Assembly: GCF_000143415.4 (NCBI RefSeq)
Contig: NW_003314754.1
Coordinates: 1 to 5,045, forward strand
DNA from: Selaginella moellendorffii
Lineage: Eukaryota; Plantae; Lycopodiophyta
Direction: 5' to 3'
DNA length: 5,045 bases
In this document: piece by piece, positions 1 to 5,045 of the stretch
How positions within the stretch are numbered: the first letter of the stretch is position 1
Layout: each line of letters starts with the position of its first letter
Translations under genes and position numbers: made by a program
The notes under the pieces: model-generated
The model's database searches: none
The model's input: only the letters and a program-made list of their open reading frames with translations
Told to the model about the DNA's origin: nothing

Positions 1-8
1 GGCTCAAA

Positions 9-98
9 CTCGGACTCGGACTCGGTCTCGATCCCGGTTTCGGACTCGGACTCGGTCTCGGTCTCGGTCTCGGCCTTGGTCTCGGCCTCGGTCTCGGT
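9..98. repeat. Hexamer tandem repeat (CTCGGH), 15 units
   Basis: ctcgga ctcgga ctcggt ctcgat cccggt ttcgga ctcgga ctcggt ctcggt ctcggt ctcggc cttggt ctcggc ctcggt ctcggt. Confidence 0.95.
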
Positions 99-99
99 T

Positions 100-526
100 C
101 CATCTCGAACTCCATCTCGGACTCCATCTCGGGTCCATCTCGGACTCCATCTCGGGCTCCATCTCGGGTCCATCTCGGGTCCATCTCGGACTCCATCTCG
201 GGTCCATCTCGGGTCCATCTCGGGTCCATCTCGGACTCCATCTCGGGTCCATCTCGAACTCCATCTCGGGTCCATCTCGAACTCCATCTCGGGTCCATCT
301 CGGACTCCATCTCGGACTCCATCTCGGGTCCATCTCGGGTCCATCTCGGACTCCATCTCGGGTCCATCTCGGACTCCATCTCGGGTCCATCTCGGACTCC
401 ATCTCGGACTCCATCTCGGGTCCATCTCGAGTCCATCTCGGACTCCATCTCGGGTCCATCTCGGACTCCATCTCGGACTCCATATCGGACTCCATATCGG
501 ACTCCACTTCGGGTCCATCTCAGACT
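100..526. repeat. Minisatellite of 37 interspersed 12-bp (CCATCTCGGACT) and 11-bp (CCATCTCGGGT) units
   Basis: Parsed by hand: 20 twelve-mers plus 17 eleven-mers = 427 bp, exactly spanning 100-526. Variant units are concentrated in the last four copies. Confidence 0.97.
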
Positions 527-757
527 CTTCCATGTGTCATGTGTTGGTCCTTTTGGGTCCCTTTTTGGAGCCTCGCTTATTGCTCACTTCGTGCTCATTC
601 CTCGAGCATTTCGTTAGGAGTTCCACTCCCGCCCTCGACCTTTCAAGTTGGAGCTTTTGGCCCAAACGTGTTACACGCGTTTGGCTTTCGCTTTGGCCAC
701 TACCACATGGCACCCTTCTGGCTCCACTTTGGGGCCTAGGGATTTTGTGTCTCACAA

Positions 758-768
758 CTCCACCACCC
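758..768 (-). promoter_or_regulatory. Putative polypurine tract (plus-strand primer)
   Basis: Minus strand GGGTGGTGGAG followed by T and then TGT (LTR start). It is preceded by the perfect hairpin GTTCGATG-AGGA-CATCGAAC (778-797). The tract is interrupted by two Ts. Confidence 0.65.
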
Positions 769-860
769 ATAGACGAAGTTCGATGTCCTCATCGAACGGT
801 AAACCATTTTATAAAGTAACACCCGCATGTGTTACCATTTCCATCTTTGGCACCTAGCCA

Positions 861-991
861 ATATTTGTCAATGGTTTGACATTGAAGGCTCACCATGCCT
901 TCTCTGTGTTCGTCAATGGTTTAACATTGAAGGCTCACCATGCCTTCTACATATTCGTCAATGGTTTGACACTAAAGGCCCACCATGCCTT
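861..991. repeat. 45-bp tandem repeat, about 2.9 copies, upstream of the PPT (3' UTR position)
   Basis: GTCAATGGTTT recurs at 867, 912 and 957 (period 45). Each unit continues ...AAGGCYCACCATGCCTT. Confidence 0.95.
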
Positions 992-2021
992 GCCCATCCT
1001 CTAAGGAGGGTAGTCTCTCCAACTTAGAGACTGATTGGACCACATGTAATGGTTATCTACTTTTATTGGTTTAGTTCTTGCTAAACCTCTTAGAGACCCT
1101 TCTCTAAGTCAATCCCACTACTCCTTCTCGAGTAGTCTCAATTTCCATCTATGGAACGTTTGCACCTTGGAATTTTTACTCTTTGACCTCTGGAAGTCAA
1201 TTTCCTAGGTGTCTCCAACACCTTGCATTGCACATTTTGTGCAACTCCACTTCCCCATCTTAGGAAGTTCTTTACTTGAGGGCACCATCATCCTCTCTTC
1301 TATTTCGTGCCACCTTGGGCACTAAGTTCCGTTTATCATACTTTGTGCTAGGGCTGTCCATGGCCCTATCATTTGGCTACCTTACTGCTCCCTCCCTTGG
1401 AGCTTCCACTTTCACCAAATTGGAGTAATTCAGAATCCATCCTTGGAAAGACACTTCCTTTCCCGCAATTTGTTAGCGTCCAACACATTAGTGTTCCTCG
1501 CCTAACTTTGCCACTTGGATTCCTTCCAAGGGCTTCCACGACCCTATCTTGGCCACTCATCTTTTGCTCCTATCCATTGATTGTTGCATCAAGCAATACC
1601 GGATCACTACCTCCCTCCTTGAGGTATTCTTTTGGTTCCATGGCAAAGCTCCACTTTGCCAAGTCCAGAGGGTGCTCACCCCTAGTAGGTCTCTTTAGCA
1701 TTTTCTGCTATGGGCCCCTTCCACGGCCCAACTTTGTGACCCTCTTATGGGTCTCTCCTAGAGACTACTTTCCTTGGACAAACTATGCCATCGCAATGAC
1801 ATAGCTCATTTCCCTAAGGTGCTTTTCCCACTTGGTCACCTTGACCAAGCCACACCATCATCAATAGTTCAAATCAACATTTTGAACTATGAACCTTATT
1901 CCTTAACCCAAACAAGGACCTTGTCCTTATTTAGCCACAAGATCACCTAGTGATCTCACCTCGGCACCTTAACAGGTTTGCCAATAGGTACTAGGTCTTC
2001 CAGACCTTTAACTCGTTAACT

Positions 2022-2148
2022 ACGACCCCGGGGGCATCCCCCACACTTGGCGGTGCGCCCAAGCCAGCCCTTCTGGCCAAGGGTCCATAGCAACTGAGAC
2101 TGGGTGTCCCCATCTCATTCACCACGTCCTTGGTGCCACTAGCACCAA
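2022..2148. repeat. Diverged duplicated module, copy 1
   Basis: Shares collinear blocks with 2200-2341: acgac..., ggcatccc, cttggcggtgYgcccaa, ccag, gtccat, gtgtcc, tcaccacg. Confidence 0.85.
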
Positions 2149-2199
2149 AGTGTTCAAGTTAGATATGCTAAGTCACGCTAAGCAATCTAACCGTGCATC

Positions 2200-2341
2200 A
2201 CGACTCCGAGGCATCCCTCGCTTGGCGGTGTGCCCAAACCAGTCTCCCCACTGAGAGTCCATGACCACCGAAATATGAGTGTCCTCATATTCCAAACCAT
2301 CACCACGGCCTAGTGATTTGGGACTCGAACCCAAGCACTAG
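2200..2341. repeat. Diverged duplicated module, copy 2
   Basis: Collinear with 2022-2148 at an offset of about 178 bp. Confidence 0.85.
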
Positions 2342-2362
2342 AGGGTCGGGACTCGAACCCAA
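2318..2362 (-). other. Two tandem tRNA T-arm/B-box-like hairpins (TTGGGTTCGAGTCCC x2)
   Basis: gggactcgaacccaa at 2320-2334 and 2348-2362. On the minus strand each is a stem closing a 7-nt UUCGAGU loop and matches the Pol III B-box consensus GGTTCGANTCC. Confidence 0.6.
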
Positions 2363-4888
2363 CCTCCGTATATGCATCTACGGACGGCATCATCCAAGAT
2401 GCCTGGCGTGACTCCCCACGCCGGTGCACCAACTTATATTTAAAGCGCGCTACAGATCACAGCTTAGGAACCTAGTTCCTCCGCACTGCCAAGTCCTCTC
2501 ACTTGACATGTCTGTGATCATGCATGGACTCCTCCATGCTTGGCCCCATGGCCCACCCTTTTTGAAGTTATCACCTTCAACTAAGGTATTTGTTCCCCCG
2601 ACGTGCCAATCTTGCTTGGCAAGTCCTCCGACCATTGTAACATGGTTCCTGCATAAGCGTGAAAGTCCTTGATCCTCGACCTTTGTTCAAAGCCCTCTCT
2701 TTGAACACTCGGGAACTACTTCCCTAACCTTGATAGCCTTGCCTCATGGCAAGCTTCAAGACCACGCTTCTGCTGCGCCACTCTGATTTCGCGCGTTCCT
2801 TGAACCATTTATGCTTGGCCTTTCTAGGTACTAAGCTACCTAGAATCCTCTTTGGGAACCTTGAAGGAACTCTGTCCCTTAGCTTGCTAAGGCTTCCCTT
2901 TTTGCAAGCTTTCCAATTGCCACATAGTCTAACATGGACAATTCTATATTTTAGACTCTCCATGGCATCACGGTTGCTAGCGGCAACACCCTCGAGCCCC
3001 CACTTGATTCTCCACTCCCAGCTGGCATAACCAACCTTGATTATGCCCTTCGATTCCTATGATTCGGTTCTATCCCCTTACCTCTTGCTTTTGGCTTCAC
3101 ACCTTTCCTTCGGTCATTCTCCTCCAAACCAGGAGGATAGCTTTGCACTTTTCTATCATGCCTTAGCAAGTATTCTTAGGGATGAACCTACCCAATAGCC
3201 CAGGGAGTGGTTCCTCAATCCGGGTATGCTCACCTTATAATCCCACACACTGGGATTACATTGTTGCTTATGGGCCTTTACATGCCCATCACTAGCCTTG
3301 CCAAAATTCCATTTTTGGCTTTGTCCAATTTGAGTAGACAGTCTTCTCCTGTCTCCACAACCTTGGACATTTGGATAGCACATACTATCCGTCATTCGCT
3401 AGGGACTTAATCCCTTGGGCCTTATTTATTGCCCTTGCGACACGAACACCACCTCCTGGTGTTCTAGAGTGTTTGGGTGTCCCAATGATGGCCTCCTGAC
3501 AATGAGCATTCCCTTTACGACATTGACTTACTATATCGCAACATAAGCAATTTCTCCCTCATAAGGGTATATTTAACTTCTTTACCCCAATAAGAAGTCT
3601 TAGGTAGTTGCCTTCTACCAGTTTAACGAATTATTTTGCACTTTTTGCTTAGTTGCCTCATAGTTGTCAAGTCCTACAACTCATTGCTGGTGCTTCCACA
3701 CCTCCATCATTATCTGGGTCACCACACTCCAACTGCATGCTCTGCAGCTTAGGCTATGCCATTCCCATTTCCATTGGGATTCCTTTGACAAGGGGTTCTC
3801 ATGAACCCACCAACATAGCCTCAAGGTATCATACCTTGGCACATTTGGTGTCTCCACACCATCGGCTCCACGAGCCTACCTCTATAACACTTCCCCTTCG
3901 TGTCTAAGTCTTTGCCAAGACCAACACCGCTCTTTCTCATGCCAACCATCCGTTAGCACTGCACCATAGAGGTCACACACAACTTTGTGTCAAAGTTGTT
4001 TTCTTCTGGGAACGCCTTTCCCATAACTTTAGTATGGCACATCTTGCCATCGATGAGATACCTTCTGTTCTCATCCTTGGATCCTATGATCCCCCCCCAT
4101 CCTTTGTGGGGTACAACACACCTCAGTCCAAATGCTTCCATCAGTCCTTTTAGGACCATCCCTTGATTCTACTTGAGTCATCCAGCAGTTTTGGACTTGG
4201 TTAATCCATAGACCCGTAAGGTCCTACTTGTGAGGCACTAGCTCACTAAAATACACTTCTTGCATTCCTGTCCTACTCAAAAGGACTATTTTCACAAGTG
4301 TTACTCTGACACTTGATTTTGTTCTCTGGGGGCAACCTTTGCCCCTTAGGACCACTTGTCCATGTGATGAGAATACCACTCATCTCTAAATACACCCCCC
4401 AACTCCTTGGGTTGTTCCAACATTTATTAAAGGTAGCCTCGGCTACCATTTTAAGGACTTGAGTCCTCTTCCGTATTTGACCTCCCACGGTCATTACTTC
4501 TGGTCTCACATTCATGAGCACCAACCTCAACTATATGAGGATAATCTTGTGACTCTTTTATTGCTTTGGAGTCTTTATCTTTCCCGTGATCCCAACTGTA
4601 GTTGTTTACCACCACTACATTAGCCAGTTTGCTAAGTCAAACGCTCATCTGGATCATATCCTCAACTCTCTGAGGAAAACCATATACTGTTCCCAAGATC
4701 CCAAAGTCATTCTATTATTGGCCCTTTTCTATCCACTACATTGTGCCCAAGTTCACGCATGAACTTGAGCGAAGAGCCATGTCCTCTCAGCATACTACTC
4801 CTCAAGGATAAGCCCACTCCTAGGACCTTCCAATGCCAATATCAATGGTGATATACTTGAGCACCAATAAAAGTCGGACTAAGGAACA

Positions 4889-4900
4889 GCTCCGATACCA
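4889..4900 (-). promoter_or_regulatory. Primer-binding site complementary to the initiator tRNA-Met 3' end
   Basis: Plus strand gctccgatacca = minus TGGTATCGGAGC, 11/12 identical to the canonical plant PBS TGGTATCAGAGC. It lies 3 nt from a ...TTACA LTR end. Confidence 0.88.
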
Positions 4901-4903
4901 AGT

Positions 4904-5045
4904 TGTAAGCGACTAAATTTTCCATTCTACTTTAGTCACTTAACCACACCTCCGACCACTTGGAGGAGTCTTATTCACAACCTCCATAAGTCCAATTCAG
5001 GACTTGGGACTTGCTAGCCATGTCTAAGCCCGACACTTTCACTCT
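4904..5045 (-). repeat. Putative 5' LTR (U5 end), truncated by the window end
   Basis: The minus strand ends ...AGTCGCTTACA immediately before the ACT spacer and the PBS, giving a canonical CA terminus. Confidence 0.78.

Follow-up and report, generated by a model that had tools for sequence, protein, structure and literature searches.

The window analysed here is a stretch of 5045 nt whose minus strand, judged from its sequence, carries most of a non-autonomous, LARD-like LTR retrotransposon, probably of plant origin. Read along that strand, the order is the end of the 5' LTR, a primer binding site (PBS), a 4.15-kb interior without genes, a polypurine tract (PPT) and, finally, the first part of the 3' LTR. 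Positions 4904-5045 (142 nt, minus strand) are the 3' end of the 5' LTR, whose sense strand closes with ...CTTACA at 4904. Three bases past this ...TTACA end lies the putative PBS TGGTATCGGAGC (4889-4900, minus strand), which agrees at 11 of 12 bases with TGGTATCAGAGC, which we take to be the canonical form of the plant initiator-tRNA-Met type. The non-coding internal domain (769-4888, minus strand) is a chain of about 90 perfect stem-loops with stems of 5-10 bp and loops of 3-9 nt. It is followed by the PPT-like tract GGGTGGTGGAG (758-768, minus strand), which is situated one base ahead of the LTR start; next come a T and then TGTGAG.... Positions 1-756 (minus strand) belong to the U3 side of the 3' LTR and form its 5' part, which opens on the sense strand with TGTGAGACAC at 756 and continues past the window edge. 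Within this part, Tandem Repeats Finder resolved positions 9-527 as a 12/23-nt satellite, with 17.8 copies at period 23 and 41.8 copies at period 12.

The LTR termini are TG and CA, with the TG of the 3' LTR at 756-755 and the CA of the 5' LTR at 4905-4904 on the minus strand. The PBS, PPT and TG...CA ends by which an LTR retrotransposon is recognized can all be read directly, in agreement with the original prediction that the region is an LTR retroelement interior. The LTRs are 4147 nt apart (757-4903), which gives the interior of kilobase size that is typical of a LARD. Self-comparison found no counterpart of 4904-5045 in 1-756. The window holds non-overlapping parts of the LTR, its first 756 nt and its last 142 nt; therefore, the LTR must exceed 756 nt in length and no comparison between LTRs can be made within the window. 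The outer LTR ends, where a target-site duplication would be expected, fall beyond the window. This length, together with an interior of 4.1 kb, rules out a TRIM. A retrozyme was also rejected, as Rfam returned no hammerhead ribozyme at E values up to 1 from a window that has each LTR in part. The sole Rfam match at E values up to 1 is a sub-threshold miRNA within the LTR satellite.

The interior had also been predicted to be non-coding, and no coding capacity was found by ORF, Pfam, motif or tblastn analysis. The longest ORF on the minus (sense) strand has 85 amino acids, and a Pfam search with the ten ORFs on this strand that reach 50 amino acids gave no match at E values up to 1. Regular expressions for the YxDD, DTG/DSG and CCHC motifs found none in any frame, and tblastn searches for traces of gag-pol returned nothing better than E = 0.04. 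Word-based protein searches with three ORFs of the window and exact look-up of ten ORFs found no relative, and the only match in an exhaustive phmmer search, P0003, is an unrelated bacterial repeat protein. An interior without gag, pol or env coding capacity is what characterizes a LARD, and solely from this absence of genes we infer mobilization in trans. The interior contains no tRNA according to either ARAGORN or Rfam and no RNA family of Rfam, which rules out a tRNA or a known RNA family as its identity. Two loose HHCC patterns, both on the plus strand and one of them inside the LTR satellite, were the only regular-expression matches.

Copies of the element were sought using DNA patterns (a long hairpin, the PBS with its flank, the PPT with the LTR start and the most conserved block of an internal duplication). 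No copy was found in viral, metagenome and prokaryote-genome collections, a blank that is expected because plant genomes are all but absent from them. The patterns matched at nine metagenome loci and three viral loci, in each case by chance. Contig L013 was rejected as a relative since it has only the LTR satellite motif in common with the element, and L014 has nothing in common with it; L010 was rejected as a control for autonomous elements as it is devoid of retroelement domains. The interior of a LARD is expected to be conserved among copies and species in both sequence and predicted RNA structure; here, structural conservation was compared among internal paralogues of the one element.

Hairpin excess over shuffled and control sequences

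Perfect Watson-Crick stems with loops of 3-10 nt were scanned for exhaustively, with 100 dinucleotide-preserving shuffles as the control. The interval 778-4854 contains 115 stems of at least 5 bp, compared with 25.1 in the shuffles (s.d. 4.7), 63 of at least 6 bp compared with 6.2 (s.d. 2.5), 27 of at least 7 bp compared with 1.5 (s.d. 1.3, maximum 6) and 12 of at least 8 bp compared with 0.4. Of all bases in the interior, 44.5% lie in hairpins whose stems have at least 5 bp (9.7% in the shuffles), and the excess is present in bins over its entire length. All 25 stems of at least 7 bp that had been predicted from inspection were recovered; this count was slightly low, as two within 778-4854 (starting at 3024 and 3979) had been overlooked. 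One more such stem lies in the LTR (at 662). The roughly tenfold excess claimed for such stems is genuine, and its size at 7 bp is larger, at about 18-fold over dinucleotide shuffles. The estimate of 90-100 hairpins is also borne out, with about 90 above the shuffle background.

The stems are mutually unrelated, as had been stated. A common 6-mer is found in only 8 of 1953 arm pairs, two of which are within a 45-nt tandem repeat, and one amplified unit is thus ruled out as the source of the hairpins; self-comparison and arm comparison agree that there was no tandem amplification of a single unit. In fourteen unrelated control contigs, the ratio of observed to expected hairpins was 0.8-2.7, and 4.1 for L013, whereas that of the interior is 10. 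Contig L013 carries inverted satellite arrays. Within the LTR, the satellite array (9-527) shows no excess and 531-757 is slightly enriched; the non-satellite pieces have six hairpins of at least 5 bp compared with 1.7 expected. An excess weaker than that of the interior is thus probably present in these pieces as well and, since the unique LTR parts are also enriched, hairpin enrichment may extend beyond the interior.

The folding energies agree with these counts. Across the interior, the mean z-score against shuffles in 120-nt windows is -2.5 on the plus strand and -2.2 on the minus strand, and it reaches -4.75 and -4.95 on the two strands for 1005-1260. In minimum-energy folds computed on 600-nt segments of the interior, 70% of the pairs span 30 nt or less (about 43% in shuffles); of the 62 perfect hairpins, 50-55 are recovered. 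G·U pairs are rarer than in the shuffles and are not enriched at stem ends. Only inverted symmetry is in excess: direct repeats number 7 and mirror repeats 5, each against 8.9 in shuffles, and this lack of excess rules out copying that is prone to slippage in general.

The enriched hairpins are restricted in both size and stability. Stems of 4 bp are not in excess (86 compared with 76), nor are loops of 0-2 nt, and loops beyond about 12 nt are at background. Longer stems have a lower GC content (0.54 in stems of 5 bp, 0.33 in those of 9 bp and 0.20 in the single 10-bp stem; Spearman correlation -0.29, P = 0.002), a trend that is absent from the shuffles, and the stem energies plateau at -6 to -9 kcal/mol. 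Stems with one mismatch are scarce (3-6, compared with 27 perfect stems). On the sense strand the loops consist of 40% G, 34% A, 20% U and 7% C, with GG in half of them; linkers, like loops, are purine-rich on this strand, and the linkers are also poor in C. Purine runs on the sense strand are no more frequent than its composition predicts, and the polarity of the arms (the pyrimidine content of 5' arms) was uninformative.

Internal repeats and CpG content

Three sets of internal repeats carry hairpins. In the three 45-nt tandem units at 861-998 (minus strand), each with the same two hairpins, the core stems are invariant and the tail linker is variable. Paired cells amount to 97.2% on the minus strand versus 88.9% on the plus strand, and all three one-sided changes give A·C on the plus strand and G·U on the minus (sense) strand. 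Two 28-nt tandem units at 2303-2358 (minus strand; repeat family D7) each close with a hairpin that resembles a tRNA T-arm, GGGTTCGAGTCCC on the sense strand.

The third set is an old duplication. Copy A (1985-2128, minus strand) lies inside an island richer in GC and CpG (1985-2460), and copy B (2160-2306, minus strand) has hairpins, whose arms differ in sequence from those of copy A, at five of six homologous positions. The copies are 75% identical over 133 columns, with an alignment score at z = 18 relative to shuffles. The homologous hairpins at 2095-2117 in copy A (8 bp with a bulge) and 2272-2291 in copy B (a perfect 8 bp) differ at three or more positions in either arm, and complementarity is intact in both. 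When random divergence of 15-30% was simulated for one copy, 1.4-2.4 hairpins of at least 5 bp were obtained, compared with the 4 and 7 that are seen (P = 0.05-0.22 for 4 and at most 0.001 for 7). One-sided pair differences give G·U on the sense strand in six or seven cases versus one. Stems have changed at 27% and non-stems at 22-23%, and the coincidence of loop centres between the copies is weak (P = 0.09). The automatic alignment of the copies yielded one clean compensatory pair in each direction, and three compensatory pairs in one hairpin hinge on where the bulge is placed. At one site, amid clustered differences, copy A has an inverted copy of a word of which copy B has a direct copy.

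The sequence as a whole is depleted in CpG with an excess of TG/CA. CpG accounts for 8 of 1089 dinucleotides in stems and 63 of 2658 in non-stems, corresponding to observed/expected ratios of 0.11 and 0.55; chance stems in the shuffles have a ratio of 0.14. Paired CpG steps number four, whereas about 13 would be expected were one arm a recent copy of the background (Poisson P of about 0.003). The CpG level of the stems is that of independently drawn complementary words. Low stem CpG was consequently dropped as proof of purifying selection; since it equals the chance-stem value, it argues solely against recent copying. Loss of CpG-bearing stems after insertion is not the cause, because an original observed/expected ratio above 1 would be needed.

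Proposed selection on the fold and alternative explanations

Several signatures within the sequence make it more likely that the hairpins have been maintained than that they arose by chance or through a recent accident of copying. In the reading preferred here, the interior is a LARD-type chain of about 90 hairpins, maintained because selection acts on how a single-stranded replication intermediate folds, a proposal that we regard as evenly poised between right and wrong. The chain resembles beads on a string, composed of short, perfect and unrelated stem-loops of roughly equal stability. The original prediction that selection on RNA fold has shaped the whole interior is not established. Compensation of stem GC for length, the hairpins retained in the duplication, the low stem CpG and the sense-strand G·U bias are signatures of maintenance, whereas the strand-symmetric signal, the scarcity of G·U and stems that change as fast as non-stems do not agree with such selection. 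Equal folding on the two strands and few G·U pairs speak against classical selection on RNA and are expected of a DNA-level or a mutational process. In addition, the G·U bias of the sense strand could stem from the same strand-asymmetric mutation that makes this strand C-poor. The molecule under selection may be the genomic RNA and possibly the first-strand cDNA too, and selection on both is proposed as the reason for pure Watson-Crick stems and equal folding on both strands. The anatomy of the element, its lack of coding capacity and the excess and properties of the hairpins are shown, whereas selection, the acting strand and the function are inferred.

A mutational ratchet without function is the alternative that survives best. 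Quasipalindrome template switching was reportedly described by Ripley in 1982 and by Loytynoja and Goldman in 2017. In this process, reverse transcriptase at work on single-stranded cDNA, or else a replicative polymerase, would switch templates within a strand (by snap-back copying or the correction of a quasipalindrome) and turn neighbouring sequence, again and again, into perfect short inverted repeats, and a non-coding interior would tolerate and accumulate the products. That quasipalindromes mutate by template switching is established (PMC7202029). The ratchet would give perfect Watson-Crick stems with abrupt ends, no enrichment of G·U and equal strands; arms that change together while the stems evolve at the speed of linkers, the site with an inverted copy in A and a direct copy in B within a cluster of differences, and the mild enrichment in the LTR pieces also point to it. 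However, direct repeats, its other product, are not enriched, stem GC compensates for length, and neither 4-bp nor decayed stems are in excess. Furthermore, stem CpG is four times below that of a recent background copy, perfect hairpins stand at matching places in copies that have diverged by 25%, and about 100 events per 4 kb would be a rate far beyond any reported. On this balance the ratchet is a possible explanation, although we think it an unlikely one.

A role at the DNA level is very improbable. The inverted repeats would act in double-stranded or transiently single-stranded chromosomal DNA, as cruciforms, replication or recombination signals or protein sites, and complete strand symmetry and pure Watson-Crick pairing would follow. 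However, a stably extruded cruciform needs arms longer than the 5-8 bp present here, the stems have no common sequence for a protein to recognize and the loop composition is strongly skewed between strands. Where a single side of a pair has changed, G·U on the sense strand is the commoner outcome, and the hairpins fill exactly the PBS-PPT span that is transcribed and reverse-transcribed.

An assembly artefact or non-biological sequence is suggested by unusually clean stems and by the failure to trace either the sequence or its ORFs in the collections searched, but such blanks are expected of collections essentially without plant genomes and the stretch has natural hallmarks (CpG depletion, a degenerate LTR satellite, diverged duplications and a correctly placed PBS and PPT), which makes this explanation scarcely credible. 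Least credible of all is an ordinary decayed gag-pol with incidental hairpins, which would match the 4.15-kb size of the interior but not its lack of any Pfam domain in minus-strand ORFs of 50 amino acids or more, of gag-pol motifs or of a tblastn match better than E = 0.04, nor its hairpin density, which is 10-18 times the shuffle value and 4-10 times the value in control contigs.

If selection on the fold of a replication intermediate is nevertheless the cause, an RNA that needs no translation could have evolved without hindrance into a closely packed series of small hairpins whose loops are rich in G and A. The most likely use, proposed by analogy, is that these hairpins would offer the Gag/nucleocapsid of an autonomous partner many sites to bind and so promote packaging in trans; they might also, or instead, compact the transcript and hinder access by RNA silencing. 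A more specific version is doubtful: that about 90 minimal stem-loops with G/A-rich loops make the whole 4-kb body a multivalent array, Watson-Crick-paired on both the genomic RNA and first-strand cDNA, that would out-compete the autonomous partner for Gag/nucleocapsid and particle space and evade RNA silencing. If true, a multivalent hairpin array would be a hitherto undescribed design principle for parasitic RNAs.

Relation to known systems

Non-autonomous LTR elements account for much of the DNA in many plant genomes, and both the role of their long non-coding interiors and the features that suit an RNA to being packaged and reverse-transcribed in trans are poorly understood. If the hairpins are selected, they would supply a substrate rule at the sequence level (a threshold of stem stability, loop size, purine-rich loops and no long-range pairing) and a natural RNA of several kilobases that evolves almost purely for local structure. 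If they are mutational, the interior would be a record of unusually intense template switching, probably during reverse transcription, with a bearing on how retroelement sequences diversify and on how structure scans of repeats are read. No description of continuous hairpin tiling of a retroelement interior was found in the literature searched, in line with the original prediction, which knew of none.

The Sukkula LTR, at about 4.4 kb, may be set beside the LTR of more than 756 nt here. The closest counterparts are the LARDs (Sukkula of the Triticeae; Kalendar et al., 2004, as cited in PMC7215508), whose interior is said to specify a conserved RNA secondary structure (PMC7215508), as the prediction of non-coding, structured LARD interiors had assumed. 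The two are alike in being LTR elements with a PBS and PPT, a multi-kilobase interior without gag, pol and env, and presumed mobilization in trans. However, in the papers searched LARDs are described as having a conserved predicted fold, whereas the present element is tiled continuously by about 90 perfect hairpins of 5-10 bp that fold equally on both strands.

Nucleocapsid zinc knuckles bind short stem-loops with unpaired G/A-rich loops (PMC11449360, PMC10726167; for Ty1, PMC5454406). Packaging signals (Psi; SL1-SL4 of HIV-1, the purine-rich Gag sites of MMTV and FIV, and TIPIRT of Ty1) likewise consist of short stem-loops that expose G/A-rich loops; however, they comprise a few hairpins in some hundred nucleotides of 5' leader, where long-range and G·U pairs are frequent, in contrast to the 4 kb found here, where binding is putative. 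The products of quasipalindrome template switching are similar in their perfect short inverted repeats, short spacers, coordinated change of the arms and strand symmetry. They are isolated events or hotspots, whereas a hundred are adjacent here, and they leave the GC-length compensation, the missing direct repeats and the low stem CpG unexplained. Viroids and other structured non-coding parasitic RNAs are also replicating parasites whose sequence is dominated by base pairing, but viroids are circular, rod-like or branched molecules of 250-400 nt with long-range pairing, whereas the present chain is linear, 4 kb long and made of purely local hairpins within an LTR element.

Anatomy and class of the element

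The minus strand of the window has the part order of an LTR retrotransposon. In this direction, the 5' LTR (...CTTACA) ends at 4904 and is followed, three bases past its end, by a primer binding site (PBS; TGGTATCGGAGC, 4900-4889) that agrees at 11 of 12 bases with the canonical plant initiator-tRNA-Met type. An interior of 4.1 kb separates the PBS from a polypurine tract (PPT; GGGTGGTGGAG, 768-758), which, like the LTR end, was identified by reading the sequence; a T follows and then TGTGAGACAC..., the start of the 3' LTR, which continues beyond the window edge, a 12/23-nt satellite repeat occupying 9-527 of this piece. The two LTR pieces within the window do not overlap with each other, so the LTR is longer than 756 nt. 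The + strand is C/T-rich along the whole window (GC skew of about -0.25), and CpG has an observed/expected ratio (o/e) of 0.41 with an excess of TG/CA; this depletion and the PBS type point to a plant with CpG methylation.

The longest minus-strand ORF comprises 85 amino acids, and a Pfam search with the ten ORFs of this strand that reach 50 amino acids matched nothing at E up to 1. Regular-expression searches of all frames of the window found no YxDD, DTG/DSG or CCHC motif; all that matched were two loose HHCC patterns, both on the + strand and one within the LTR satellite. Furthermore, a tblastn search of the window with 33 long ORFs of other loci gave nothing better than E = 0.04, ARAGORN called no tRNA in the window and Rfam returned a single sub-threshold miRNA match inside the LTR satellite (MIR2933, 394-505 on the minus strand; 27 bits versus a gathering score of 70), which was taken for a repeat artefact as it lies wholly in the satellite. 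Large retrotransposon derivatives (LARDs) are defined as non-autonomous LTR retrotransposons with a large interior (PMC7215508). Since it has the part order of an LTR element and no detectable coding capacity, the present element is a LARD on the criteria tested. LARDs are credited with conserved predicted RNA structure (PMC7215508).

Hairpins of the interior

All 25 perfect stems of at least 7 bp listed in the original prediction were present, together with two that it had missed (3024 and 3979). The excess that it claimed was borne out against dinucleotide shuffles, with 27 such stems versus 1.5; the corresponding counts were 115 versus 25 for stems of at least 5 bp, 63 versus 6.2 for at least 6 bp and 12 versus 0.4 for at least 8 bp. 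Of the bases of the interior (757-4903), 44.5% lie in hairpins with stems of 5 bp or more (9.7% in shuffles); the median start-to-start spacing of these hairpins is 30 nt, and the excess is present throughout all 250-nt bins. Comparison of the arms found them without relation to one another, as had been stated, and folding z-scores in 120-nt windows, a measure suggested with the original prediction, averaged -2.5 (+) and -2.2 (-). One stretch of 256 nt gave a row of nine or ten hairpins on folding (z of -4.75 and -4.95 on the two strands). In 600-nt folds, pairs spanning at most 30 nt make up 70% of the total (about 43% in shuffled sequence), and the minimum-energy structure includes 50-55 of the 62 perfect hairpins. 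The observed/expected ratio for stems of at least 6 bp is 10 in the interior, versus 0.8-2.7 in unrelated contigs, including phage contigs with terminators, and 4.1 in L013, a metagenome contig with inverted satellite arrays. Full-text literature searches found no description of short perfect hairpins tiling the interior of a retroelement, and none is given in a survey of perfect inverted repeats in 118,019 genomes (PMC13155455); the structure figures of the original LARD paper may overlap with the present finding.

The enriched symmetry is the hairpin-forming one alone: for direct, mirror and complement-only repeats matched in size and spacing, counts lie at the expected level or close to it. 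The excess begins at 5 bp (4-bp stems, 86 versus 76 expected) and is seen only where the loop measures about 3-9 nt; loops of 0-2 nt have none. Stem GC falls with length (0.54, 0.53, 0.46, 0.42, 0.33 and 0.20 for 5 to 10 bp; Spearman -0.29, P = 0.002), so that stem energies level off around -6 to -9 kcal/mol; shuffles have no such trend. The stems are also clean: a single internal mismatch occurs in only 3-6 hairpins, compared with 27 stems of at least 7 bp that are perfect, and just 10 of 115 stems continue past one mismatch. Loops and linkers of the + strand are G-poor (loops 9% G); sense-strand loops contain 40% G, 34% A, 20% U and 7% C, with GG in half of them. The z-scores show no strand asymmetry, shuffles contain more G·U pairs on either strand than the interior does, and stem ends show no enrichment of wobble-type mismatches.

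Internal paralogues and CpG in stems

No family copy of the element was found in viral, metagenome and prokaryote-genome collections, which hold essentially no plant genomes; the evolutionary evidence is therefore restricted to two small sets of internal paralogues. The first is an array of three tandem units of 45 nt (864-998), with the same two hairpins in every unit; the ten core pairs are invariant but for one change, and the six-base tail linker differs at nearly every position. The three one-sided changes give mismatches on the + strand and G·U on the minus strand (88.9% versus 97.2% of cells paired).

The second set is a duplicated segment of 145 nt (1985-2128 and 2160-2306; 75% identity, alignment z = 18). 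Of six homologous positions, five hold hairpins, although their arms differ between the copies. The clearest example sets the bulged 8-bp stem at 2095-2117 against the perfect one of 8 bp at 2272-2291: three positions of the 3' arm and three or four of the 5' arm are different, with full complementarity within each copy, the set of compensatory pairs depending on bulge placement. Automatic alignment scored a single clean G-C to A-T exchange per direction; one-sided changes gave A·C (sense-strand G·U) in six or seven instances and G·T in one. Random mutation of one copy to 15-30% divergence left 1.4-2.4 hairpins of at least 5 bp; the copies have 4 and 7 (P = 0.05-0.22 and at most 0.001). The case for selection is weakened in that stem columns did not change more slowly than non-stem columns (27% versus 22-23%) and loop centres coincide between the copies only at P = 0.09.

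CpG accounts for 8 of 1089 dinucleotides in stems and 63 of 2658 elsewhere. Stem avoidance of CpG was dropped as proof of purifying selection: the o/e is 0.11 in stems and 0.14 in chance stems of shuffles, where it is also low because a CpG step in a stem requires CpG in both arms. A recent-copy model predicts about 13 paired CpG steps, versus four seen (Poisson P of about 0.003), which argues against a recent origin of the arms by reverse-complement copying of background sequence. Post-insertion loss of CpG-bearing stems was rejected as the source of the deficit, as it requires an original CpG o/e above 1.

Origin of the hairpins and minor features

We put at about even the chance that the hairpins are kept by selection on fold, whereby foldable stems of minimum stability would be maintained in a single-stranded intermediate. 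Such maintenance best explains the hairpin-only symmetry, size limits, GC-length compensation, clean stems, persistence across 25% divergence and CpG result. The original claim that RNA-fold selection shaped the whole interior would fit the symmetry, stability, clean stems, persistence and CpG; the equal strand z-scores, scarce G·U and stems that are not slower go against it. The PBS-PPT placement, purine-rich sense-strand loops and sense-strand G·U bias suggest that the acting intermediate would be genomic RNA. The pure Watson-Crick, strand-symmetric character could reflect a need for the first-strand cDNA (+ strand sequence) to fold too, or could have a cause other than RNA selection. Candidate functions, by analogy, are multivalent Gag/nucleocapsid binding for packaging in trans, transcript compaction and protection from silencing.

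The chief rival, possible but rather doubtful, is a mutational ratchet of intrastrand template switching, by which quasipalindromes are corrected (PMC7202029). Such switching naturally yields stems that are perfect and symmetric between the strands, as well as arms that change in concert without any slowing of stem evolution; however, the absent direct-repeat excess, GC-length compensation, sharp 5-bp threshold and CpG deficit are left without explanation. DNA-level roles, decayed gag-pol or artefact jointly take the small remaining probability.

Outside the interior, the non-satellite LTR pieces contain four hairpins of at least 5 bp (531-757; 1.0 in shuffles), with a 7-bp stem at 662, and two (4904-5045; 0.7 in shuffles), and the LTRs may share the hairpin excess in a sparser form. 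The satellite unit TCTCGGACTCCATCTCGGGTCCA is present in about 18-42 copies (9-527); its core GGGTCCATCTCG is also arrayed in both orientations at 900-1720 of L013, an unrelated 60%-GC contig (ENA assembly ERZ17096198) that resembles the window in this motif only. Three JGI metagenome contigs representing one locus with a 19-nt PBS-plus-flank pattern (L004, L007 and L008) have no ORF longer than 144 amino acids in 11.8 kb, the look of eukaryotic non-coding DNA and a mild hairpin excess, and are unrelated to the window. Two 28-nt units in tandem (2303-2358) both terminate in GGGACTCGAACCC (sense strand GGGTTCGAGTCCC), the first matching a tRNA T-arm in shape and in loop sequence (5-bp stem, 7-nt TTCGAGT loop); neither ARAGORN nor Rfam gave a tRNA there. 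These units and the internal duplication coincide with a GC-richer island (1985-2460; 53-57% GC, CpG o/e of 0.63-0.83 versus 0.2-0.4 in most of the interior), which may have been acquired later or be under different constraint.
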